Assembly: GCA_024704765.1 (NCBI GenBank)
Contig: JAKMXF010000299.1
Coordinates: 751,368 to 815,367 of the forward strand
Direction: 5' to 3'
Length of the DNA stretch: 64,000 bases
DNA from: Oopsacas minuta
Lineage: Eukaryota > Animalia > Porifera
Part shown: piece after piece, positions 10,470 to 60,249 of the stretch
Position numbering within the stretch: the first letter of the stretch is position 1
How the letters are laid out: each line of letters starts with the position of its first letter
Program-made: the position numbers and the translations under genes
Notes under the pieces: generated by a model
Databases searched by the model: none
What the model was told of the DNA's origin: nothing
The model's input: the letters and a program-made list of their open reading frames with translations, nothing else

Positions 10470-10613
10470 GTTTAGCAGATAGATGTGATACACGTTTGCT
10501 CTAAGGAAGTTAATTTACCAAAAAAGTAAGGTTTATAGTAAATACAACAATGATAGTTTGGCATAAACTGTTCCAATGACTATATCTGGGAAATCATTCT
10601 ACCAACCTACCTT

Positions 10614-11675
10614 TCAGCATAAATACTTTCTACATTTGGTTGATTCACATAAACAAGGTACACCCTTGAACTTTTTAGTTGATTGAAAATCTTTGTACAT
10701 TCGATAATCAAAAGTTAACTCTGATCCAGCTATGATATGCTTCTTTGAGAATAATGCGATATGAGGTAAATTGACATCTAAATTGTCAATCCAAACCGGA
10801 AATACTTCAAGATTAGGTTCACATGAGTGGTTTACGAAATGCGATATATTTCCAAAGTTTTTTGCATCAATAGTATACACATTATCTACGTCATTAAAAT
10901 CCAAATCAAATAGATAAGTTGCACCCTCGTTATCGTAATACTTCCCCCTCAATTCTGCTTCACGTGAAGTTATAACTTCGCCCAGATATTCCATCACAAA
11001 CCTTCCACTTTCTATTGCAAATTCTGTCTTTACTCCCCAACCCTTTCCATTAACAGTAGTAAACAAGCATAAAGGAACCTTTCGCAAATGTTGTACAATA
11101 CGATTGGAACAATTTTCTTTGCACGAACAGGCTGAATTGCATTCAAAAATCGGTTTTCTTTGGGTATGCTTGAGTGTACCATATTGGTTGTAAGCATTTG
11201 TTACTCCTGATAACCTGGGACAACAATAGTCAGTATTGAGACAGTTTGAGGAGTATATAGAGGTACCTTTCTTCTCACAATTACATCCAATTGGTGGAGG
11301 TGCTATTGGTCTTTCTATATTCAACCCAAAGATATTTTCTCTAACATAAGTGAAATTTGGGATTTCACTCACCCTATCTTTGACTACTTTTATGGGGGCC
11401 TCACCATACGGTAAACTTAAATTTATGTAATGTTCGAATAAAGTAAGTTTCAGATGCATAAAGTGTTCATTCTTGCTTGATAATATCCGAGATACTTCCA
11501 GACTTCTAGGTAGCTCAACGATATCAGCTGAGTAGAACTTTTCTATAATGTTTCTATCATCAATAGACCCCAGTAGTGCTGATAATGATTTTAGACATGG
11601 AATTCTACAGTTTGAAAATTTAAATACACTTGAGATATCTGGCGGGTTGTGGGCGTCATTAGAATGTATATCCAT
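10614..11675 (-). CDS. SUV39H: SUV39H/Clr4-family histone H3K9 methyltransferase (pre-SET, SET, post-SET), no chromodomain, 353 aa from the first ATG
   Basis: Pre-SET GCNC...CCP...IFECNSACSCKENCSNRIVQ. SET GKGWGV, FVMEYLGEVIT, GATYLFDLDF, GNISHFVNHSCEPNL, ELTFDY. Post-SET CLCESTKCRKYL. GATYLFDLD and GNISHFVNHSC match SUV39H1/2. The track start at 11681 is TTG; the first ATG is at 11675. Confidence 0.95.
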   Translation of the reverse strand: MDIHSNDAHNPPDISSVFKFSNCRIPCLKSLSALLGSIDDRNIIEKFYSADIVELPRSLEVSRILSSKNEHFMHLKLTLFEHYINLSLPYGEAPIKVVKDRVSEIPNFTYVRENIFGLNIERPIAPPPIGCNCEKKGTSIYSSNCLNTDYCCPRLSGVTNAYNQYGTLKHTQRKPIFECNSACSCKENCSNRIVQHLRKVPLCLFTTVNGKGWGVKTEFAIESGRFVMEYLGEVITSREAELRGKYYDNEGATYLFDLDFNDVDNVYTIDAKNFGNISHFVNHSCEPNLEVFPVWIDNLDVNLPHIALFSKKHIIAGSELTFDYRMYKDFQSTKKFKGVPCLCESTKCRKYLC

Positions 11676-13889
11676 CTCCAAAATTTAGTCGTATTTATGA
11701 CCCAGTAGAATTAAGTTTGATCGTTGAAATCTTGTATTTAATTATCATTTTATATTTTGAAACTGTGGTTTACTTATAATATTCTGAATGCATACAACCT
11801 TGGCTAAAGTACTGAATAAATTAGTAAATTATACTGATCTATTCAATAAAATTATGTTGGAATTCATCAATATTTTAGCTGTTCGTTTACGTGAACATGT
11901 TGATATTATACATACGTAGTCAGAGCTCTGCCGTTGTGTGTAACATTTCGAAGTAGGTGCGACCCCTCCTCATTTAGGTCCAATTTCATTGAAAATTTGG
12001 GATGCTATAGAACAGTGATGGGCAGAAATTTATCTTTCGAGATCAGTGAAATTTCAAGATAACTTGGCGTGCTAAACTTGTATATTTGTAATAACATGAT
12101 AATATCCTTGCTTGCGGCATGATAAGGATTGCTAGATCGAATGTTTTTTGGAATGAATTATCAGGTTAAAATATGTATCTACGTATACTTAAAACGCAAT
12201 TAATCTGGTATATATGTTCATTCTGGATGCTCAACCTGTATGGATACATAACCCGAGTGCGGTTGCGAAACTTGCCGCCTAGTCAGTCCGTTAAGTAACG
12301 GGACGACCGGTTATCCATCTGGACGTCCTGTTACGTTATGGGACGGTTGGTCGCGCATTCGGTCAACCAGTTAACTAACATGATGTGAGAATTTAAATAT
12401 GGATGATCAATTATATACAGAAAGCATAGATATGTAATCCATCATAAGTTCGGTAACTATGGCATTAAGAACTTGCGATCACAGATTTTGATCCAGATTG
12501 TAATCTCTCTTTTGAGAGATCAGAAGGGGAGTCGTCGAACCGTTTAAAAAGCAGCAGCGTGAACTTGATCGGCTAAACAGGACCAATTAAAATATACGTT
12601 ACTATTTTTTGAAATGATTTGCAGCCCATGTATGAAAATAAGTTCTTGTACATAACGTATATTCCAGAGATGGAACCGGTCAGGACAGACCGGACGGTCG
12701 AGTTTTAACTGGCAGGCCGAGTTGGGCTGGCTGATTTTGTGTAACCGCTGAATGAGTTAGAAGTCAAATTGTGTTACTATAATTCTAGATATTTTTGAAC
12801 CCTAATGAATTTATGAGAGTTTCCTACACGAATTTTTGTACTAGTTGTGTCGTTTGAATGACCGGACCGGTTCCAGAAATGGAACTGGCTGGGCCGGGCC
12901 GGGTCGGGTTGGGTACTGGTTTGAATCTTGACCAGTCGGCCGATATCTCCATATGATCTTTCAATATGGTTTATGGCCGTAATATATAATAAATACCTTC
13001 ATTAGGGCTGAAGTCGGTAAACCAGTTAACCGCTATGAGAAATATATTCGGTTAGCCGAATAGTGTCATTTTAACCATTATGTTCACAGTGTTCCTAAGG
13101 TTTGAGAGGTACGAAATTATATATACACGAATTCCGCTAGTTAGGTATTTATGAGAAGTTGATTTTTAGATCCATATTCCTAAATTTCAATAGTTTTTGT
13201 AAGTTACAATCATATCAAGAATGCATATGTAAGGCTATGTATATTAATTACTTGTATCTCATCTGGAATTTCTTCGGAAACTGGCACGGCGGGCGGTATT
13301 TTATTTATTTTTTATAGGCCAGTTAATATATAAAATATTTCACTCTTAGATTATCTCGCCATTTCTCTGGACACTAAACATACTGAACTTTTCAACTGTA
13401 CAACTAATAAAATGTGGATTGCACACTCCGTGGCCAAAGAATTATCCATACATTTGGAAAACATGTAAAGAAATCTTTCCGGACAGGGGATGGAATTTGG
13501 TGCGGCGGGGATGAGAAACAATTATATTACTTTACATGGCCTAATGATATGTATTGATATTTTCAAATTTAGTTAACAAACTTCGTTGTTTAGATTAAGG
13601 AAAATTGTAACGGTTAACCGCTATTTTTCGAAAAGGTTTTAACAACCCACATAAGTTCTACCTGGATACATATTAATACGTAATGTATGTTTAAGTTATT
13701 GATCTTCTGTTTTTCAATAAATTGATGAATACCTTTCACACATTCTAAAGGTCTTTGCCATATACGTTGTTGATGGCTTCCAAGGAGTTCAGCAATTTTG
13801 ATACATCAAAATCTAAGATAATCAAACTTTAACCCTCATCAAATATTTGTCTATATGATTCACTTTATATCTTTGCGTTTTTAAATATA

Positions 13890-14063
13890 CAGTAGAGTCT
13901 CGTTGATACGTACACCAGGGAACTGGGAAAAATTCCTACTCCTTATCCGGAGTAGGTATTATCCAAACAAATATACATTGAAAAGACATCAAAAGGGACT
14001 GATAAGTTTATTCCTTACCCGGAGTTACGTCTTAACCGTGTTCGTGTTAAGGGGATTCTACTG
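13890..14063. mobile_element. pogo/Tigger-like MITE (similar ends near 8620 and 20715)
   Basis: TA-CAGTAGAGTCTC ... GGGATTCTACTG-TA. Confidence 0.75.
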
Positions 14064-16149
14064 TACATGCACAAATATACTATACAGTGTAACAGTGACC
14101 CAACATTGGCCAGACTACTGGCCCACGTACGGGGGCGCATGAGTGGGGGAGGTGGCGCAAGTATGTGGAATGTGGTGGCGGCTTAACCTGGCCCAAAGAT
14201 GTTAGCATGATTTTTGTTTGTTTTTGTTCAACAATAGACTCCTTTAAATGAGGACTGTAGGCGCTTGAACTCGGTCATGAAACTTGGGTCCATTAGAATA
14301 AATTTGAAGTTCTATATTTCAAAGTACCACGTTTTTGTCCGAATACATGTATTACATAGTTATAAATATATTTCATCAATCACAAAATGGAATAATTTTG
14401 ACGAAACGTGTGAAATTTCTGCTTAGCAGCATTTTTGGGCATAGATGTGTCCATCTTTGATACACCGTAGAACGCTAAATACTACAAATATGATTTCAGA
14501 ATTCATACTCTATGATCTATTGATATTTTTATACAAAATATTCAATTTAAAACTCTATATTAATACATTGGGCTATTTAACACCCTATCAAATTATTGCT
14601 TCCGACGCCGCGCTACCGTGGCACTTGGGCCAAGTGTCCCAGGAGTTCTTTTAAACTGGACGCTTGATCCACTCTGTACACACCACATAATGGTAATGTT
14701 GCCACATATTTTTCACTATTATTGCGTCTGCGCATCTGGAGTTGCCTAATTCCTATCTTATCATTCATATAATCACAAAAGTTCAGTGGAAACCGCCTAT
14801 TAGCAATTCTTACTTTGCAAGAATTCTCCTTGCTAAAACTTGAATTTTTCTATATGCACACTTATACCATGCAAAATTGGATTTTACGCAAGTCCTTGAA
14901 ATATGTTGCTAATAAGCGAATTTTGCTATTAGACGAGTAGCTAATAGGCTGATTCCACTATATTTGTTTTATTAGTTCTATAATACGGGTGACCATTAGT
15001 CCTTTATTTCAAAGTGCATTCCGTTTATTTCTGCCTGTTCTTTTGTCTTGTTTTCCCTTATTAAATCGAGGATGTCTAATCCGAGTTATATTGTATATTA
15101 TAAATAATTATTTGCAGAGAATTTCAGACAAGTCTGAGCTCAAAAATGTTTCTCTGACTCGTGATTAATAATTTATTTAATTTGACTGAAGTTCGTCACG
15201 ATTTGGTCCATTATCCAATTTGGTTGATATTATCACTACGTTTTCTATAACATCCCTATGGGTATTTGTATCTATGCAGGCCGGCTCAACTAGGGCTGCG
15301 ATCCCTGTATTTGGCCCCGGAAAAAGTGCTCCCAAATAATAGGTCCCCACATAAACTGTCTGAAAACCTTCAAATTTTAGAGAAGGTTAGACAATGAAGT
15401 CCTAACAAGTGTTGTCAGCTCCAACACTCCAATGACAATAATCCGAAAAGGAAATATATGATATTCTAATTTTATTAAGTTATACTCATCTGAAATTTTG
15501 GTTGCGACTACTCTGTTCAAGCTATTTCTTCATTTCATTTAGATTTTTCCCATCATAGCCTATTTTTGATTTGGGCAGCAATTTCCATCAAACTGAGAGG
15601 GCTAGGTTCTCTCACTTTGAAAAAGAGGATGACATAGCCGGAGCTTCTCTTTGTTTTGGCAACGCAGCAAAATGCGGTCTAAAAGGCCTAAATTAGCTGC
15701 ATCACGACACAGAAATATTCACAATTACTCTACTATAACCTATTACAGCAGAAGTTTTACGTTGGCAATGAAACGAAACTCAAAAATTTTACCACTTCGT
15801 TTTAACCAATTCCTGCACCATAAACGAGATTTTAGCACCTTTTTGAAGTCTTAAAATGCATGTAGAGTACGAATATAGTCCTAAAATACGTTATTATACT
15901 CATTAATGATGATTTATAAACATCAGGCGACATATTGGTTGAATTTCGGTTCGGTCGACACGTGCCTCCAAGGTACAAACTCCGTGGGATGTCGCCATGG
16001 AGTTGGGCATTGGTGACAAATTGGCAATAAAGTCCCCTGGTATGCTCGTGTCTGGGCATGCCCAGTGCAGCAACCCTGGAGATAGGCTGAAAGGGGGATA
16101 TAACCCCGCGGGATAATACACATGATATAGGTTGATTGTGGAGTTTTTG

Positions 16150-41621: not shown

Positions 41622-42933
41622 CAGGGTGTCTAATAAGTTCTGTTATACAATTTCGCGCCTTAGACAGTAGCTCTTAATATACTTATAAAGTAATCTTCTA
41701 GATTTTCTTGTACCATTTTTGGCGCTCTTTCAAATTATACCAAGTATATATCATTCAAGTTGATGATTTACCAGAAAATCATGTTAGAAGAAATTCGTCC
41801 AAAAATTGTCACTTTTCATGAATCTGGGTTTAGCAACAGTGAAATTCTAAAAAGGCTAAAAAATGATAAAGTCAATCCCATGCTGATCTATCGCACAATA
41901 AAACGCTATATAGAGACTGGGAGTGTGTCTGACAGGAAACGAGTTGGTCGTCCAAGATCCGCTCGCACACCAGCCCTGAAGAATAGTGTTAGATGTCGAA
42001 TCCTGAGAAATCCCCGGCGTTCAATGCGAAAAATGTCTCGTGAATTCTGTGTCAATCACAAAATGATGCGGAAATTGGTTGTAGAGGACCTAGGAATGAA
42101 GTCCTATAAGCGGAAAAACGTACACCATCTTAATGACTCCATACGTCGTAAGCGACTCGAAAGATGCATACAACTAAAAGCCCGATTCGCTCCTGGGACT
42201 GAAGATCAGATTTTCTTCTCAGATGAGAAGCTGTTCACGGTTGAGGAGGCAAGCAATCGTCAAAACGACCGTATACTTGCTTCTCGAAGTCAGGATATCC
42301 CAGATAGCATCAAGTACATTGATAGAGTCTAGAAGCCTCTTTCTCTGATGGTATGGGCGGGTGTGTCGGCAGACTCACGGACAAACCTGATTTTTGTCCC
42401 CCAAGGAGTGAAAATAAACTCCCAGACGTACAGAGAGCTGGTCTTGGAGCCTGATATTGCGTCTGCTGGTGAGAAGCTCTTTCAAAACCATCCTTAGACT
42501 TACCAACAAGACTCTGCGCCTGCACATGCTTCAAAAGTATCCCAGGGTTGGTTCCGAGAGCAAAATATCGATTTCATAAGTAAGGATGAATGGCCACCAT
42601 CAAGCCCAGATTTAAACCTACTCGACTATTCTGTTTGAGCAAACTTGGAGAGCAGGGCCTGTGCGAAATCTCACAAGAGTTTGGAGTCCCTCAAAGTTAG
42701 TTTGTTGAGTGAATGGCAGAAAATCCCACAGGAGGAGCTGCGAAAAGCTGTCCATCAGTTTCGGAGCAGACTAACTTCCGTAATTCATAAAAAGGGAGGC
42801 TATATTGAATGATATTTGTAATGTGTAATTAGGAACATAAGTCCTAAGAAAATAGAAGGTTTCATGGCTTTACAATGGATACATTTGAAATCTTTGGGGA
42901 ATTGATATATAACAGAACTTATTAGACACCCTG
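41622..42933 (+). mobile_element. Full-length DD37D (maT/mori-type) Tc1/mariner element; transposase 41781-42812 with three in-frame stops
   Basis: Perfect 26-bp TIRs CAGGGTGTCTAATAAGTTCTGTTATA, TA on the left. FFSDEK, QQDSAPAH-(37 residues)-D (WPPSSPDLNLLD). No frameshifts. Confidence 0.95.
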
Positions 42934-46064: not shown

Positions 46065-47371
46065 CAAGGTGGCCAATAAGTTCTGACCAAATTTAAAAAC
46101 TGACCATAATGTAAGATATGTAAGTATTCGCTATTTCTAATGAATTATATCTTGAGTAGACCATTTATCTACCATCATCTAACACCTTGATTGCATATTA
46201 GCCCACACAAGAGTTATTTCACCATGAATCAGGAAAGAGCAGCAATAATTGAATTATTTTCTAATGGAAAACGTCCAGGAGGAAATTTTGAAACTGCTCC
46301 TATCCCTAAATCGGGAAGGAAAATCATTTATCGCACTATCCAACGTTAGAATAAGACTGGGGGCATAAAAGATATGCCAAGAAGCGGTCGACCAAAGTTG
46401 GTAACAACTCCGAGGCTGAAAAAAGTTGTGATCGATAGAATACGGCGAAATCCTCGACGATCCCTCCCGGAAAATGGCCTCTGAGCTCAAAGTTTCGCAT
46501 GGATCGATGCAAAACCTTGTGAAAAACGACTTGCACTTCAAATCTTTTAAAAGAAGAACAATTCACTTCCTTTCTGAGAAATTGTGAAAAAGAGACTTGC
46601 CAGAAGCAAGAGCATGCTGACTCGGCTCGCAACTCAACCCCTGGAAATATCATATTTTCTGACGAGAAAGTATTTACCATAGAAGAAGCGACTAACAGCA
46701 GAATGATCGAATATTAGCCCACACGTCTTCGAGCATCACAGAAAAGACTCTATATGTCAAACGGACTCAAAAACCTCAGTCGGTGATGGTTTGGGCGGGA
46801 ATCTCAGTAAAGGGCCGTACTCCATTGGTTTTTGTCCCAGTAGGGGTAAAAATAAATTCGTCAACATATCAAAAGTTGATTCTGAAGCTTGTGGTGAAAG
46901 ATTTGAGCAAAACGATGTTTAACAAAGAGCCATTTCTATTCCAGCAAGACGGCGCACCGGCTCACACATCAAACATCTCCCAAAATTGGTTACGAGAAAA
47001 CATTCCAGATTTCATTACCAAGGAGGAATGGCCTCCATCAAGCCCAGATTTGAATCCAATGGACTTCTCAATCTGGTCCATATTGGAGAAAAATGCCTGT
47101 GCAAAGTCACAGTCAAGCGTGGAAGCTCTGAATAAGTCTTTGCACCGTGAGTGGGAAAAATTCTACAAGATAACCTACGAGCCACCGTTGAGGCGTTCCC
47201 CCAACGTTTGAAGAGGGTAGTCGAAAAGAAAGGCGGTTACATTGAGTAACTACTATCGAATGTATTGATATAGTTATCTAATAGAACTGGAATAAATCTC
47301 AGTGAATATAGTTTGATAATTTTTTGAATTATGAATTTTTAACAATGGGTGAGAACTTATTGGCCACCCTG
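46065..47371 (+). mobile_element. Second DD37D element (different family), frameshifted transposase
   Basis: TA-CAAGGTGGCCAATAAGTTCT ... AGAACTTATTGGCCACCCTG-TA. FSDEKVF, QQDGAPAH-(37)-D (WPPSSPDLNPMD). Confidence 0.93.
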
Positions 47372-47658: not shown

Positions 47659-49694
47659 CAGTAGAACCTCCCTAAGTGGGGTGTCTGGGAAGCACTGCTA
47701 AAATTTTGCACCCCACTTTGGGAAATACCCCACTTCTGACAATAATTAAAAAAAATTTCATTAAGTGTTGTTCTAGATTTTATATGATTTATGGCTACTG
47801 TTCATAAAACTCAACTAAGTTTAAAGAGGAAGGTCGAAATTGCACAGGATCTATCCAAAGGAATGACCCAGTTAGATGCTGTAAAAAAGTACAAGGCCTC
47901 CAAAGGTACTGTGTCTAGGATTGGCAAGGAAAAGGAACGATGGGTAGCTATTAATTTTGAAACACTAGATAGTGCTCCTCGCAAAGGTACGGAAAGAAAG
48001 CGTATAGTCAAGGTTAAGACTATTGATCTGGATGACAAACTTGTTGAGTATATCGTGAGAGCCCGAGATTTAAATGCTATTGTAACTGGTCCAATTATAC
48101 AAAATATTGCCACAATGATTTCGAAGAAGCTGCCCAATTTAGATGGTTTTAGTGCCTCTAATGGCTAGTTAGAAAGGTTCCGAAGCCGCAATAGAATTGT
48201 AAGTAGAGCTCTCCAAGGAGAAAGAGCGTCAGCTCCCATGAATGCTGTTGAGGAATTCAAGAGGGTATTACCTACTCTCCTTAAAGGTTATGACAAAAAA
48301 GATGTTCTAAATGGTGACGAGGTTGGTCTTTATTGGGAACAAAGTGGAAAAAGAACATTGCTTCAGCAAGGCACAGACCCTGCAGGAAGTAAAGTCAGCA
48401 AGAAGAGGATTACTGTGTTCATTGTTGCTGCTATGGATGGACATATGGAGCAAATGATTGTTATTAATCAGTATTCAAAACCAAGAGCATTCTCTAGAAT
48501 TCACTACGACACTAATAAACTCCCGGCATGCATGCAATGGAAAGCGACTCCCAAAGGATGGATGAATTCTACTATTTTCAAGGAGTGGCTTTTATATTTA
48601 AATACAACAATTGAAACACAGAAACGGAATGTCTTGCTCTTTCTTGATAATTTTTCCGGTCATGAATGTGGATTCGAATTAGCAAAGGAACATCTAACCC
48701 ATGTCCGTGTTGAATGGTTACCACCGAATTGTACATCTCTGTTACAACCTATCGATCAAGGGATCGGTAACGCTTTGAAAATTAGATATCGTAAATACCT
48801 CCATGAACACATGTCTAAGATGATTTTCATCGATAAACATCCCATGGAAGGCGTCGATATGTTGCGTGCATGTGTATGGCTTGGTAGGGTTTGGAATTCT
48901 TTACACAATACATCCACTGTTTCTCGTTGTTTTGAGAAAGCTGGTTTCCGCTTTGAATCAGATAATGAAATCATTCCAGATCTAATTTCAGATGTTGTAA
49001 ATCATGATGAGCAGGATATCCTAGATCAAGAAGTTTTAATAGCTGGTCCACCTGCAGTTGTAGACGCTGATCAAGTTCTAGAAATGATTGAGTTGTTCGA
49101 TGCTAAAGAAATCAAGTTAGAAATGCCGAAGAACAGGATGACAGTGGTGCTAAACCTGAAATTGAAATAAATGAAGAACAGGTAGACCTAGAACTAGGTA
49201 GTCGTCCAATAAGTACAAAAGAAGCCATGTTGCGTTTATCTGAACTCGAAAAGTATTTTGAACACAAAGGAATGGATGATGAAGTAGCATGGGTTATCTC
49301 AGTTCAAGACAAAATCCTGGAAAGGGTACAGGCTAATCTGATTCAACCATCAATTGACGTTTATCTGTTGAAGAAGAATAATGAAAATTAAGTGGTATAG
49401 GAAGGATACTATCCAAGTATTGAATTACTTTTAGCATATAGTAGTGATATTTTATGATATATATTCACCCCACTTAGGTACCCCGCTTTGGGAAATACCC
49501 CATTTTGGATACCCCACTTTGGGAATACAAAATGTAAATTTTGTATACAATATTGTTTAAAATTTCAGCAGGCGCACCCCACACCCCACTTCAGACAAAA
49601 ACCCCACTTTGGGAGGTTCATTTAGTGTAGTTTACTAAACACACCAATTGTACACCCCACTTTAGGCAGCACCCCACTTTGGGAGGTTCTACTG
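47659..49694 (+). mobile_element. Full-length pogo/Tigger element; transposase 47791-49391 with one in-frame stop and one frameshift
   Basis: TA-CAGTAGAACCTCCC(T/A)AAGTGGGG TIRs. CENP-B-type HTH N-terminus, LNGDEVGLYW, FLDNFSGH-(35)-D (QPIDQG). CCCCACTTTGGG subterminal repeats. Confidence 0.95.
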
Positions 49695-52523: not shown

Positions 52524-52997
52524 TCATTTCGAAATAGGAATAGTCAAAATGCTTTCAAGGTAAAATCCCAAACGACTAGATGAAGGTTTGACATTTACGA
52601 ATTTTCGAATGTATTTTCTTTCTCTTTTAGCAAATTGAGCATATTTAGAAGGAGGTCTGGGTTCTCTAGAAATTTCCATGATTCCAGCAACGATAGAATA
52701 TAGAGTGAAATCAGGAGCCATTCTGACATTAAGGCCAGGGTGAAACTTGGTGCCCCTCTGACGACAAAGAATGATGTTAGATCTAACAAGTTCTCCATCA
52801 GATACCTTAAGACCAAGGTGCTGTCCTGGACTCCCACGATTGGCAATTGTTTGAGCACGGTTCGAGAAAGAACAAACGTAAATTTGAAATAAAGAGTGAG
52901 TGCGAAGATTCATTGCATGACTTAACATTGAACAAAACAATATTCTAAAAGAGTGAGGATGCATAATAAGTATGGAAATCAGTTTAGTCAAAATCAT
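52524..52997 (-). CDS. MRPL27: Mitochondrial ribosomal protein bL27m; true start uncertain (52997, 52964, 52928 or 52913)
   Basis: SPGQHLGLKVSDGELV...IILCRQRGTKFHPGLNV...DFTLYS matches the bL27 signature. The N-terminal extension is plausible as a targeting peptide. C-terminal RKFVNVKP. Confidence 0.9.
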   Translation of the reverse strand: MILTKLISILIMHPHSFRILFCSMLSHAMNLRTHSLFQIYVCSFSNRAQTIANRGSPGQHLGLKVSDGELVRSNIILCRQRGTKFHPGLNVRMAPDFTLYSIVAGIMEISREPRPPSKYAQFAKRERKYIRKFVNVKPSSSRLGFYLESILTIPISK

Positions 52998-53940: not shown

Positions 53941-55387
53941 ATGGCGGAACCTCTTGATTAGCCGACCTTTAGGCTGATCAAGTCACAAAGAGGAGGAGAC
54001 AAGCTGTCGGAGGATGGATATTAATTTAGAGTGCAGAGGAGAGTTGGAGATGTGACGGATTGGTTGTGTGAGCAAAGAGGGGTCTGCAAAGCTAGAGTTT
54101 ATACCAAAGGGATGGTGATAGTCAAGCGCACGAATGAGCACTCCCATGGGCCCGACGATCAGGCAGCGGACTGTTATGAAGCGAAGGCAGGCATGAAGAG
54201 GAAAGCACGGGAGTCCCAGGATAGCACACACCACATAATGGGCGAGAGTTTGCAAACAGCATCAGAGGGTACTGCTGCTAAACTCCCCAAACTGGACAGC
54301 CTGGAGCGGACGATACAACGCCAACGTGCTAGTTTACTTGCAGCTCCAGCACAGTCTACCACTCTAGCAGAGCTAGCTCTACCAGCAGTCTACCATCAGA
54401 CAGCCAAGGGAGAACAGTTCTTACTATACGACTCTGGTGTAGACGATGTACACAGATTCCTCATCTTCGCGACACAACACAACCTCGGGATGCTGCAGCG
54501 CAGCAAGATCTGTCTAGCTGATGGCACCTTCAAGACGGCACCGCCCCTCTTCGCCCAGGTGTATGTGGGCATGGACTCCGTGGAGGAGATGATCCTATGA
54601 AAACCGGTCATCTGTTACCGAGCCTGTTCGTGCTACTGCCCAACAAGACGAGGCTGCCTACCTGAGGATGTGGGAACAGATCCGCCTACTGTGTCCACTT
54701 GTCCAGCCTCAACAGATGCTCCTGGACTTTGAGAAGGGCGCGATTACCAGCTTTGAGCATGTCTGGCCTAGCACAGTAGTGAAGTGCTGCTTCTTCCACC
54801 TCACACAGAATATCTGGCGACATGTGCAGTCTGTAGGGCTGCAGTCTGCCTACACACATGACGAAGAGTTGGCTATGCGCATCCGGAGGATACCAGCCCT
54901 TGCTTTTGCCCGACCAGCAGACGTACCCGATCTGTTTGATCAAGTGGCAATGGACCTCCCCCTTACGCCTGAAATAGGCGAACTAGTCGACTACTTTGAG
55001 AGGACGTATATCGGCCGCACAGTTGCCAGCGGATACCATGTAGCGGCTACGTACCCTATTCACCTGTGGAACAACCACATCGGCACGCCCTTAGGACTCC
55101 CCCGTACAACCAACGCCGTAGAGGCATGGCACCGCAGCTTCAATGCCACTGTCGGCTGCCATCACCCTACCATATGGAAGTTCATCCTCTCCCTCAAGCG
55201 TGAGCAGGGCCTAGTGGAGGTGCGGCATACCAACTACCTTGTTGGCAAGCCGCCAACCAAGCGGAGGCGGTCCCAACAGAGTGAGAAAGCGTTGAAGACT
55301 CTAGTTCGTGAATATTATTCTCCAGATCGTTCTAAAATGGAGTTCTTGCAGGGTGTAGCACATCATTTCAGTCTGGGAGCCGATTAA
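53941..55387 (+). pseudogene. MULE transposase pseudogene (FLYWCH-like domain plus MULE DDE domain)
   Basis: ATG at 53941. QRGGDKL..DGY, WLC...C...HSH, DGTF, LLDFE, CCFFH, NAVEAWH. Two in-frame stops before 54031 and single-base frameshifts near 54568 and 54650. Confidence 0.93.
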
Positions 55388-56710
55388 TATGTTAATCTAA
55401 AGTATTATCTAGCCCTCAAATACATTGATTGGACATAATCCTTTAGATTAACATATTAATCGGCTCCCAGACTGAAATGATGTGCTACACCCTGCAAGAA
55501 CTCCATTTTAGAACGATCTGGAGAATAATATTCACGAACTAGAGTCTTCAACGCTTCCTCACTCTGTTGGGACCGCCTCCGCTTGGTTGGCGGCTTGCCA
55601 ACAAGGTAGTTAGTATGCCGCACCTCCACTAGGCCCTGCTCACGCTTGAGGGAGAGGATGAACTTCCATATGGTGGGGTGATGGCAGCCGACAGTGGCAT
55701 TGAAGCTGCGGTGCCATGCCTCTACGGCGTTGGTTGTACGGGGGAGTCCTAAGGGCGTGCCGATGTGGTTGTTCCACAGGTGAATAGGGTACGTAGCCGC
55801 TACATGGTATCCGCTGGCAACTGTGCGGCCGATATACGTCCTCTCAAAGTAGTCGACTAGTTCGCCTATTTCAGGCGTAAGGGGGAGGTCCATTGCCACT
55901 TGATCAAACAGATCGGGTACGTCTGCTGGTCGGGCAAAAGCAAGGGCTGGTATCCTCCGGATGCGCATAGCCAACTCTTCGTCATGTGTGTAGGCAGACT
56001 GCAGCCCTACAGACTGCACATGTCGCCAGATATTCTGTGTGAGGTGGAAGAAGCAGCACTTCACTACTGTGCTAGGCCAGACATGCTCAAAGCTGGTAAT
56101 CGCGCCCTTCTCAAAGTCCAGGAGCATCTGTTGAGGCTGGACAAGTGGACACAGTAGGCGGATCTGTTCCCACATCCTCAGGTAGGCAGCCTCGTCTTGT
56201 TGGGCAGTAGCACGAACAGGCTCGGTAACAGATGACCGGTTTTCATAGGATCATCTCCTCCACGGAGTCCATGCCCACATACACCTGGGCGAAGAGGGGC
56301 GGTGCCGTCTTGAAGGTGCCATCAGCTAGACAGATCTTGCTGCGCTGCAGCATCCCGAGGTTGTGTTGTGTCGCGAAGATGAGGAATCTGTGTACATCGT
56401 CTACACCAGAGTCGTATAGTAAGAACTGTTCTCCCTTGGCTGTCTGATGGTAGACTGCTGGTAGAGCTAGCTCTGCTAGAGTGGTAGACTGTGCTGGAGC
56501 TGCAAGTAAACTAGCACGTTGGCGTTGTATCGTCCGCTCCAGGCTGTCCAGTTTGGGGAGTTTAGCAGCAGTACCCTCTGATGCTGTTTGCAAACTCTCG
56601 CCCATTATGTGGTGTGTGCTATCCTGGGACTCCCGTGCTTTCCTCTTCATGCCTGCCTTCGCTTCATAACAGTCCGCTGCCTGATCGTCGGGCCCATGGG
56701 AGTGCTCATT
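54133..56710. repeat. Long palindrome: 1270-bp arms (54133-55402, 55441-56710) with a 38-bp spacer
   Basis: Line-by-line comparison found only three mismatches (55168/55675, 55231/55612, 55286/55557). Confidence 0.97.
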
Positions 56711-57524: not shown

Positions 57525-58836
57525 CCAGGTTGTCCAAAAAGTTCGCGGAATTGCAAATATATGTTATTTATCGATGATCATACTCAACTAATTAGTGTTC
57601 ATAGTTTTCAATAAATTCACCCTTAACCTCGATACATTTCTTCCATTTTGATGGGAGTTTATTTATTCCTGTGGTGAAGAATTTTTCGGGGGTACCTTGA
57701 ATCCATGAATTTACAGCGGACCTAGGTGCTCAAAATCGCTGAAACGTTTACCTCTAAGTGGTCTTTTCATTTCTGAAAAAAGCCAGTAGTCGCTGGGCGC
57801 TAGATCTGGGCTGTATGGGGGAAGTGGGAGTAATTCGAACCCTAAATGTTGAATTTCATCTAAAGTTCGCCTGCTGGTATGGGCTGGAGCATTATCATGC
57901 TGAAGCAAAACATGAGAACTCAACTTGCCACGCCTCTTAGACTTGATAGCTTCGCGCAATTTCTTCAGAACTTGAACATAGTATTCAGTATTTATTGTTA
58001 CTTTGTTAGGTCACCAATCAATCATGATTATTCCCTTTGTGTCCCAAAAAACTGTTGCCATCCGTTTACCTGCTGATGCGACGGCTCTGGGTCTAATTGG
58101 AGTTGCTTCATGCCTACGCTTCCATTGACTCGTCTGTAAACTTGTTTTAGGCTCATAAAAATGTATCCAAGTCTCGTCTCCTGTGACTAAACGATCAAAG
58201 AACCTTGGCTCCTTCTTAGAAATCCGTAAGAGCTGGCGACAAACACGAACCCTTTCAATCCTTTGAGATTCAGATAACAATTGGGAACCCAACGAGAAAG
58301 AACTCTCGACATTCCCAATTGTTCAGTTAGAATCTTATCAAGTATTGATTTTGACATCCCCAATTCTTCCTCTAACTGCTGCAGAGTCACACGTCTATCT
58401 TTATCAAGAATGTTTGATATAATTTTGATATTTTCTTGGTTGGAACATGTTTTCGGACGACCAGGTCTTGGGTTATCATCAACAGTTGAATGCCCATCAT
58501 TAAATCTGTCAATCCATTTGTAAACCATCGATTTACCAGGGCATTTATTACCATAAACCTTTTCTATCTCGTAGAGAATCTCGCTTTCACTTTTATTTTG
58601 TTTCCAGAGAAACCAAATGATACATCGTTTCCCATCTTCTGAGTTTTCCATTTTAGAAAAAAATACGACAATCGTAAATGATGCTAAAAGAATACCTAAA
58701 CCAAACTTTTTGATTACAAAAGTTAGGATAATTGAGATAAGGTATATTAGAATTAATCGAAACAATAGGCTAATTGATAGAGTGTATATAACACAAACTA
58801 AGGATAAAATTCCGCTGAACTTTTTGGACAACCTAG
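57525..58836 (-). mobile_element. Full-length DD34D mariner (inner layer), frameshifted transposase starting at ATG 58651
   Basis: TA-C(C/T)AGGTTGTCCAAAAAGTTC TIRs, 1312 bp. SRWVP, VTGDETW, QHDNAPAH-(34)-D (YSPDLAPSD). Confidence 0.95.
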
Positions 58837-60249
58837 TAAGTTGAATATTCACGATATGCTATTCGAACACTCGATTACCTCTGTAGCCGTTAAAAGTATA
58901 CGAACTTTTTGAAATTTCGTTACTTTATGTACATATTTAACCACAAAAATTGATCATACAATGCTAAAAATCATATTCGGAATCAATTGACCAATCAAAT
59001 TAGGTGCGAATTGTTGGTATTCCTTGGAAAAGGTGGTAATCTTGGGCTCTGATTAGGAAAGTCTTTGAACAAGGTAATAAACTTAAATTGACGCGATTTC
59101 TATTGCTGAATCTGGAAAATCTGCCATAAATATCAAAAAACAATCAATTACGTCATTTTCGGGACGTACGCATTTCGCATGGCTTGGTAAGGTTTTCACC
59201 CAGATTGAGAATTCTTCATCTTCTAGATTAGATATCTTGCTACTAATCCTATTGGCTGGATTTGGCGGTATATATTTTGCATTAAGTAAGAAGCAACCAG
59301 AAATTGTAGAAATGAAGTTTTCTTCAAATGCATTGAGTGCAGCTTTTACAAAATGGAACCATATGAGATGGGTTTAGGGCTGGTTCTATGTCATCAGAGA
59401 GCTAAAGAGTTGCCTATATGTTGTTTCCATTTTATTTGTCAAAAGTTCATATATACAGGGTATTATATAACTATCTTTGTCGAAGTGAATGGTGTAGAGT
59501 TGAAAGAATTGACTTGGCACAACACTAAATACGCCATCGGCGAACTAATTGCTCGAATCACACAAAAGTGAAAGCATTTGACGATTACAAAAAACTAAGA
59601 TTCTCTTCATTTCGCCAATCTCAGAATTATAGAAATGATTGTCATTTCAGTGATAATTATCCTGAATTTTTCAGGGATAGCTATATCTTCCAGCAGACGT
59701 TGAGATATTAAAATTTTCGTTAACATTTTTTGATGACGGATTGGCCGTTTTAGAGAATAAATTTAACTAGACTAGAAAAGGTTGAATCGGTCATTCTTCA
59801 ATCTCACTTGCTAGTACTTTCTTCACGAACAGAAAATATTGCAATCTTATAAGTAGATGTTTCGTTAACAGTTATTATTTTTGAAATCATAACAGGTCTT
59901 CAAAATGAATCTAATATGGTTTCACAACCAAATGAACCAATGAACTTTAAATGGATAAAATTTCTTACGAAAAATCGTCTGACAACGAATTGTCCCAGTG
60001 AGGAAATCTCTGGCGAAGATGTGTTCGCCATTTATCATAGACTACTATATATAAGGCTTGTAGCGTAGGATATTGACCGGTAATACAAAATCTTAATAGC
60101 ATTTCAATACTTCGGATCAAATGCATTGCAGCCACAGCCGAAGGACTCTACACATATATAAATGTATTAAATAGGATTTTGACCCACATAAAATGTAATA
60201 TAGTATTAGGATTTTGAGCCGCATATCTATCTTATTAAAGCTCAAAAAT

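Follow-up and report, generated by a model that had tools for sequence, protein, structure and literature searches.

Introduction

In the H3K9 methyltransferases of the SUV39H/Clr4 family, the chromodomain is the textbook element through which H3K9 methylation spreads by read-write coupling and is inherited epigenetically, and H3K9me is also bound by the chromodomain of HP1. Neurospora DIM-5 and C. elegans SET-25, which belong to the same SET subfamily, are H3K9 methyltransferases that possess no chromodomain and depend on partners for their targeting. To our knowledge, neither of them carries the SUV39H N-terminal motif, and we know of no glass-sponge counterpart of the DIM-5 partner complex DCDC (DIM-7/DIM-9/CUL4/DDB1). 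In mouse Suv39h1, residues 1-41 bind HP1 and chromatin, and their deletion nearly abolishes pericentric H3K9me3 (PMC5538823); binding of the same segment to chromatin also occurs independently of HP1 (PMC5538823).

In this study, we analyzed a SUV39-type gene in a 64-kb stretch of genomic DNA (hereafter, the window) from the glass sponge Oopsacas minuta. Its product shares the Pre-SET/SET/post-SET arrangement with vertebrate SUV39H1/SUV39H2 (KMT1A/B) and Drosophila Su(var)3-9 (43% identity to the catalytic domain of human SUV39H2). It also has the linker helix that precedes the Pre-SET domain and, at the level of a pattern, the C-x-[IV]-P-C-L-x-S motif at its N-terminus. Unlike these enzymes, however, it is devoid of the N-terminal chromodomain that defines the canonical SUV39H/Su(var)3-9/Clr4 architecture, and is smaller (353 aa) and intronless, and cis read-write coupling cannot exist in it. 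The similarity to DIM-5 was much more distant (134 bits, versus 230 bits for SUV39H2).

Results

Gene organization and catalytic module

The longest ORF of the window was found at 10614-11681 on the minus strand. Its first ATG, at 11675, gives a protein of 353 aa, and the stop codon lies at 10614-10616. The features assigned to this locus were as follows.

10614-11675, minus strand: complete single-exon coding sequence (353 aa plus stop) of a chromodomain-less SUV39-type H3K9 methyltransferase, assigned from the ORF, Pfam, structure matches and orthologues
10604-11698, minus strand: 1095-nt contig of run X4, read as an unspliced transcript, with a 23-nt 5' leader and 10 nt past the stop
11613-11675, minus strand: residues 1-21, variable and nearly neutral N-terminal tail (dN/dS about 0.3-1.5; pLDDT <50)
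11556-11612, minus strand: residues 22-40, conserved N-terminal motif CRIPCLKSLSALLG, aligned to the SUV39H N-terminus (dN/dS 0-0.29)
11460-11555, minus strand: residues 41-72, short helical/disordered spacer at the chromodomain position of canonical SUV39H (helices only, no strands)
11400-11459, minus strand: residues 73-92, linker helix LTLFEHYIN, counterpart of W-E-x-x-L-N, packing on the catalytic domain (model helix 70-86; pLDDT 75-91 by 10-residue block)
11100-11399, minus strand: residues 93-192, Pre-SET with nine cysteines (Pfam, alignment)
10704-11042, minus strand: residues 212-324, SET with GWGV, NHSC, ELTFDY and Phe309 (Pfam, dN/dS 0.02-0.06, fold)
10617-10655, minus strand: residues 341-353, post-SET C-x-C-x4-C (alignment)

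Pfam searches of the 353-aa protein detected a Pre-SET domain (PF05033) at residues 93-192 (4e-13) and a SET domain (PF00856) at residues 212-324 (8e-21). In alignments of 15 and 40 homologues, the nine Pre-SET Cys residues (131/133/145/151/152/179/183/185/189) and the motifs GWGV, NHSC and ELTFDY were all located at invariant or nearly invariant columns, while the post-SET Cys341/343/348 (C-x-C-x4-C) were invariant across the aligned homologues and the switch position was occupied by the invariant Phe309 within IALFS. The description of the catalytic motifs as intact, with Phe at the switch position, in a first-pass annotation made from the DNA letters was thus borne out. Since the Pre-SET/SET/post-SET module is intact, the enzyme most likely methylates histone H3K9, and the Phe at the Phe/Tyr switch would allow trimethylation.

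When sequences in the PDB were ranked against the protein, the catalytic domain of human SUV39H2 was placed first (230 bits, 4e-67), with weaker matches to S. pombe Clr4 (162 bits), EHMT1/2 (about 135), DIM-5 (134) and SETMAR (103), a lead of about 70-130 bits for SUV39H2. In addition, the AlphaFold2 model of the 353-aa protein (pLDDT 76.7) gave SUV39H2 (2r3a) as the top Foldseek match, with a TM score of 0.90 by target.

N-terminal motif and linker

In the MAFFT alignment, CRIPCLKSL shared columns with the C-x-[IV]-P-C-L-x-S found near the N-terminus of SUV39H2 in vertebrates and of the amphioxus and Ciona proteins, LTLFEHYIN was matched to the W-E-x-x-L-N linker of SUV39H, and the chromodomain columns formed a single clean gap in the glass-sponge protein. 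The interval between the motif and the linker was 48-49 aa in six glass-sponge proteins. Vertebrate SUV39H2 proteins have 117-121 aa in its place, and those of amphioxus and the bivalve Pinctada about 200 aa. Both correspondences, as well as the shortened interval, had been proposed in the first-pass annotation and held in the alignment, the likeness of the motif being at the level of a pattern only.

The pattern [IV]PC[LVIM].[SP] was found in 46 of the 195 SUV39H homologues, and was located upstream of the linker wherever a linker was found; its background frequency was two matches in 148,332 residues of six-frame translation. An N-terminal profile built from 125 chromodomain-bearing SUV39H sequences picked out the right glass-sponge residues, but at a non-significant E of about 3, and a profile of 28 cnidarian motif-to-linker segments gave no significant glass-sponge match, yielding just a 12-aa motif stretch (P0006, E about 0.2-1). 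The N-terminal profiles missed significance because the motif is too short. Searches of the ESM Atlas with residues 1-95 returned sub-threshold matches only and no meaningful neighbour. Segment 22-40 was shown to be constrained (dN/dS 0-0.29) and correctly placed relative to the linker. Taken as a comparison of sequences, the N-terminal likeness to SUV39H is real but pattern-level, and the presumed homology rests on a short pattern.

Absence of a chromodomain

The Pfam Chromo model (PF00385) gave no match in the 353-aa protein even at E<=10. No beta strand was present in residues 1-92 of the AlphaFold model, which contained helices at 31-34, 41-49, 58-66 and 70-86 together with low-confidence coil. 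We further built an HMM from 94 SUV39H chromodomains and searched six frames of the window and of loci L001-L007 (270,594 residues). The best hit across the window and the seven loci, at an E of 0.19, was on the wrong strand and downstream of a relative's gene, whereas as a control the same HMM detected half-chromodomains of 18-29 aa at 1e-7 to 1e-13. A previous version of this HMM, contaminated by two misaligned chromodomain-less rows, had been discarded and rebuilt.

The claim of the first-pass annotation that the protein has no chromodomain was thus substantiated by Pfam at E<=10, the AlphaFold model, the ESM Atlas and our own HMM, and the scan for Chromo found nothing in the ORF, the 64-kb window or the relatives' flanks. 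The 353-aa enzyme has no built-in H3K9me reader and, because the chromodomain is absent, is unable to read H3K9me by itself.

Gene model and apparent transcription

Reading upstream from the annotated start, an in-frame stop codon was reached after 3-30 codons in each of the six genomes, and at two of the six loci the call starts further upstream, with the homologue of the 11675 ATG being an internal Met. The 1095-nt contig of run X4 matched positions 10604-11698 over its entire length, passing through the AG before the ATG without a joint or loose end. Its depth was 247, as compared with 0-3 on both flanks (~100x the flank depth), whereas the DNA runs X1 and X2, derived from the same sample as X4, showed flat single-copy depth over the region. 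X4, which is not recorded as RNA, was taken as RNA or cDNA from the shape of this coverage; on that reading, the intronless gene appears to be transcribed. The gene was also present, at about 98% identity, in a fifth run from a different organism.

As for a spliced upstream exon, which the first-pass annotation had considered in view of the AG, the collinear X4 contig and the in-frame stops in the six genomes leave little room for one. Moreover, such an exon could not restore the usual order of the domains, because the chromodomain of canonical proteins sits between the motif and the linker, a stretch that is here an uninterrupted ORF. The genomes of glass sponges are intron-poor, with 1.59 introns per gene in O. 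minuta (PMC10280926), and many genes of the glass sponge A. vastus consist of a single exon (PMC10282587); the intronless state is thus no argument for a retrogene.

Two further observations were made at the 3' end of the gene. The contigs of X2 and X4 both break at 10604-10634 with a 30-nt overlap, which suggests a heterozygous site near 10604. The AAG followed by GTAGGT after the stop codon (10605-10613, minus strand) resembles a strong 5' splice site, at which no joint was seen.

Relatives, selection and phylogeny

The orthologues found in five related assemblies were 346-388 aa long and 63-76% identical, and all consisted of Pre-SET and SET only. The dN/dS values (Nei-Gojobori) were 0.08-0.18 for the whole gene; by region, they were 0.02-0.06 in SET, 0-0.2 in the linker and 0-0.29 in motif residues 22-40, and the first 21 residues were about neutral. 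Based on the low dN/dS and on dS values exceeding 1 between most pairs of orthologues, the gene was judged to be old, functional and kept by purifying selection. Within the glass-sponge group, the chromodomain-less state reads as old and fixed.

In a careful maximum-likelihood tree of 85 catalytic domains (unrooted), the six glass-sponge proteins formed a 100/100 clade with a stem of 1.05 changes/site, joined with other non-bilaterian sequences at 61/81. A quick tree to which cnidarians had been added grouped this clade with a tick sequence, a placement that was flagged as a long-branch artefact, and the tick was removed. Without it, the careful tree, again unrooted, placed the glass-sponge clade next to that of demosponge SUV39 (90/82), in line with the species tree; forcing the clade to group with the cnidarians cost 3.3 lnL units and was not rejected (p-AU 0.23). 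Across the trees, the stem measured 1.05-1.5 changes/site. All trees were unrooted, containing no EHMT, SETDB1, SETMAR, Clr4 or DIM-5 outgroup, and the named top database matches were nearly all SUV39H1/2 or Su(var)3-9. Membership in the SUV39H lineage is hence supported by score ranking, the naming of the matches and the N-terminal features rather than by a rooted tree.

The first-pass annotation had called the protein a SUV39H orthologue that has lost its chromodomain. Of this, the lineage was supported (SUV39H2 at 230 bits; 2r3a at TM 0.90) and the absence was confirmed, but the term orthologue and the polarity of the loss both rest on unrooted trees; the SET-domain phylogeny proposed with that claim gave, as an unrooted tree, the position beside demosponge SUV39.

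Other family members without a chromodomain

The demosponge SUV39 proteins, the clade nearest to the glass-sponge gene (90/82, unrooted), also include some chromodomain-less members: no Chromo was found in the models of Halichondria panicea (468 aa) and Amphimedon queenslandica (695 aa), whereas SUV39 of Dysidea avara carries Chromo at residues 15-66. They differ from the glass-sponge protein in their length (470-810 aa) and in that the chromodomain, where present, occupies the very N-terminus and is followed by a long linker; the PCL motif was not seen in them. Eight demosponge-like ORFs of 667-810 aa (P0146, P0147, P0148, P0163, P0170, P0185, P0188 and P0190) have their first residues partway through a chromodomain (LKWKGY, NTWEP), which suggests that a conserved intron splits the chromodomain of these genes. 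A linker of ~450 aa then leads to Pre-SET, and ORF-based calls of an absent chromodomain among the relatives of these ORFs may be artefacts.

In cnidarians, no Chromo was detected by Pfam at E<=1 in SUV39H2 of Hydra vulgaris (327 aa; P0221), the SUV39H2-like protein of Actinia tenebrosa (444 aa; P0198), or the Actinostola (P0199) and Desmophyllum (P0197) proteins, the latter two being annotated as 'hypothetical protein', and all 17 cnidarian-clade sequences in the tree were without a chromodomain. Three chromodomain-less transcripts carrying the same N-terminal motif (P0012, P0156 and P0175) had been candidates for sponge sequences; this was rejected, their nearest named relatives in a protein search being cnidarian, and they are most likely from coral. 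In a separate observation, the cnidarian-clade SUV39-type model P0211 (eukprot, 604 aa) had a C-terminal C-type lectin domain (6e-12), and is probably a fused gene model.

The cnidarian proteins share the layout without a chromodomain with the glass-sponge enzyme, but the catalytic domain of the latter is just about 40-43% identical to theirs. In anthozoans, about 45 aa separate [IV]PCL from W-E-x-x-L-N, and a short N-terminal motif kept without the chromodomain was thus seen in two groups, the glass sponges and the anthozoan cnidarians. A profile search detected no homology between the cnidarian and glass-sponge spacers separating the motif from the linker. Because the spacers are not detectably homologous and the best tree separates the two groups, the chromodomain losses in glass sponges and cnidarians were probably independent. 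The chromodomain-less layout is, on the sequences compared here, real but not unique to the glass sponge. We found no description in the literature of chromodomain-less SUV39 in sponges or cnidarians; family proteins of this type are already public and have passed without comment, under the names SUV39H2 in Hydra and SUV39H2-like in Actinia and Halichondria, and under an unrelated name in Amphimedon.

Genomic surroundings

Transposon-derived sequences were recognized in the window as follows.

41760-42332, 46783-47211, 48238-49170 and 58187-58852: transposase remnants with DDE_1 (1.6e-30), DDE_3 and HTH_32/HTH_48 Mos1-type DNA-binding domains (Pfam)
54668-55387, plus strand, and 55456-56175, minus strand: mirror-image ORFs of 239 aa, each with a partial MULE match (residues 13-48, 22.2 bits), in a region of 52% G+C

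The latter pair, 54668-56175, represents a transposase fragment duplicated in inverted orientation. High-copy repeats at 12700-14100 reached a depth of up to about 7x the single-copy level; in run X1, the summed contig depths there were about 1400-1750, as compared with about 229 for single-copy sequence, with many joints and variant contigs, and the RNA-like run X4 was also deep (360-580). Of the ten larger ORFs scanned, just one other gave a Pfam match unrelated to transposons: a 157-aa ORF at 52524-52997 on the minus strand contains a Ribosomal_L27 domain (6.7e-19) and is probably mitochondrial ribosomal protein L27. The first-pass annotation had regarded the TE-dense setting of a chromodomain-less enzyme as notable. 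The density itself was evident from the transposase ORFs (DDE_1, DDE_3, MULE, HTH) and the repeats, but the layout proved not to be special to a TE-rich genome, occurring also in cnidarians, Amphimedon and Halichondria.

Discussion

The structural claims on the glass-sponge SUV39 enzyme are made with high confidence. As a whole, the reading that we favour, and consider fairly probable, is that of a glass-sponge enzyme of the SUV39H lineage without a cis reader, in which catalysis is predicted to be intact and H3K9me would be read in trans, likely via HP1. The retained motif (residues 22-40) would anchor the enzyme, either through HP1 or by direct contact with chromatin, and H3K9me would be read by the chromodomain of HP1, its most likely supplier; as for the de novo targeting of transposons, other H3K9 pathways may contribute. 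While the first-pass annotation had suggested a different recruiter, HP1 would be the simplest one, because the retained N-terminus corresponds to the HP1/chromatin-binding segment of mouse Suv39h1. The HP1 step in itself is put forward tentatively, its chances being somewhat short of even.

Recruitment might instead depend on a partner other than HP1, in which case the role of the motif would be to bind that partner, or chromatin itself. A DIM-5-like CUL4/DDB1-type complex, small RNA/PIWI, readers of DNA methylation or sequence-specific factors could each take this part: DIM-5 is an established case of a chromodomain-less enzyme working through a partner complex, the likeness of the motif to the vertebrate N-terminus is pattern-level only, and the mouse segment can bind chromatin independently of HP1 (PMC5538823). 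We nevertheless consider this unlikely, as the match to SUV39H2 (230 bits) far exceeds that to DIM-5 (134 bits) and nothing that we found spoke positively for a partner of this sort. Distinctly unlikely, too, is that the gene represents an additional copy peculiar to this lineage, such as an old retrogene from a chromodomain-less transcript, with a canonical chromodomain-bearing SUV39H elsewhere doing the main job. The lack of introns and the very long stem in the trees would fit such a history, but single-exon genes are common in glass sponges, and the best careful trees place the clade beside demosponge SUV39, where the species tree predicts it. Among the best 120 database matches, moreover, no second SUV39-like ORF (194-618 aa) came from the five related assemblies, the depth in the DNA runs was that of a single copy, and the gene is old (dS >1 between most pairs) and strongly constrained.

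An incomplete gene model, with the chromodomain encoded in a spliced or trans-spliced upstream exon, was considered in view of the AG directly before the ATG and the trans-spliced leaders mentioned for A. vastus (PMC10282587). Against this, the X4 contig extends collinearly for 23 nt across the AG, showing neither a joint nor a loose end, the frame is closed by upstream stops in six of six genomes, no chromodomain-like ORF was present in the 64 kb or in the relatives' flanks (5-8 kb), and a chromodomain so encoded would fall on the wrong side of the N-terminal motif, making this explanation very improbable. Scarcely credible, finally, is a decaying or catalytically dead copy: the stem branch is fast-evolving and the surroundings are TE-rich, but the invariant SUV39H columns are kept, including the Zn-binding Cys residues, NHSC and the Tyr of FDY, the dN/dS of SET is 0.02-0.06, the ORF is intact in six genomes, and the depth of the X4 contig is high.

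A wider proposal, which is offered as doubtful, is that SUV39H has shed its chromodomain several times independently in non-bilaterians, namely in glass sponges, cnidarians, Halichondria-type demosponges and Amphimedon, with both the spreading and the inheritance of H3K9me there proceeding entirely via a trans reader through HP1 bridging. If this were true, these lineages would be natural experiments on the need for cis read-write coupling in animal heterochromatin, with the 353-aa protein of the glass sponge representing a naturally minimal SUV39H.

Returning to the glass-sponge enzyme read in trans, these proteins constitute no new kind of system but, being compact and naturally occurring, would be suited to comparing HP1-bridged spreading with cis read-write spreading, with the retained N-terminal motif as a candidate handle for the trans reader. 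The presence of a conserved and apparently expressed chromodomain-less enzyme of the SUV39H lineage would imply that some animals can do without the cis reader.
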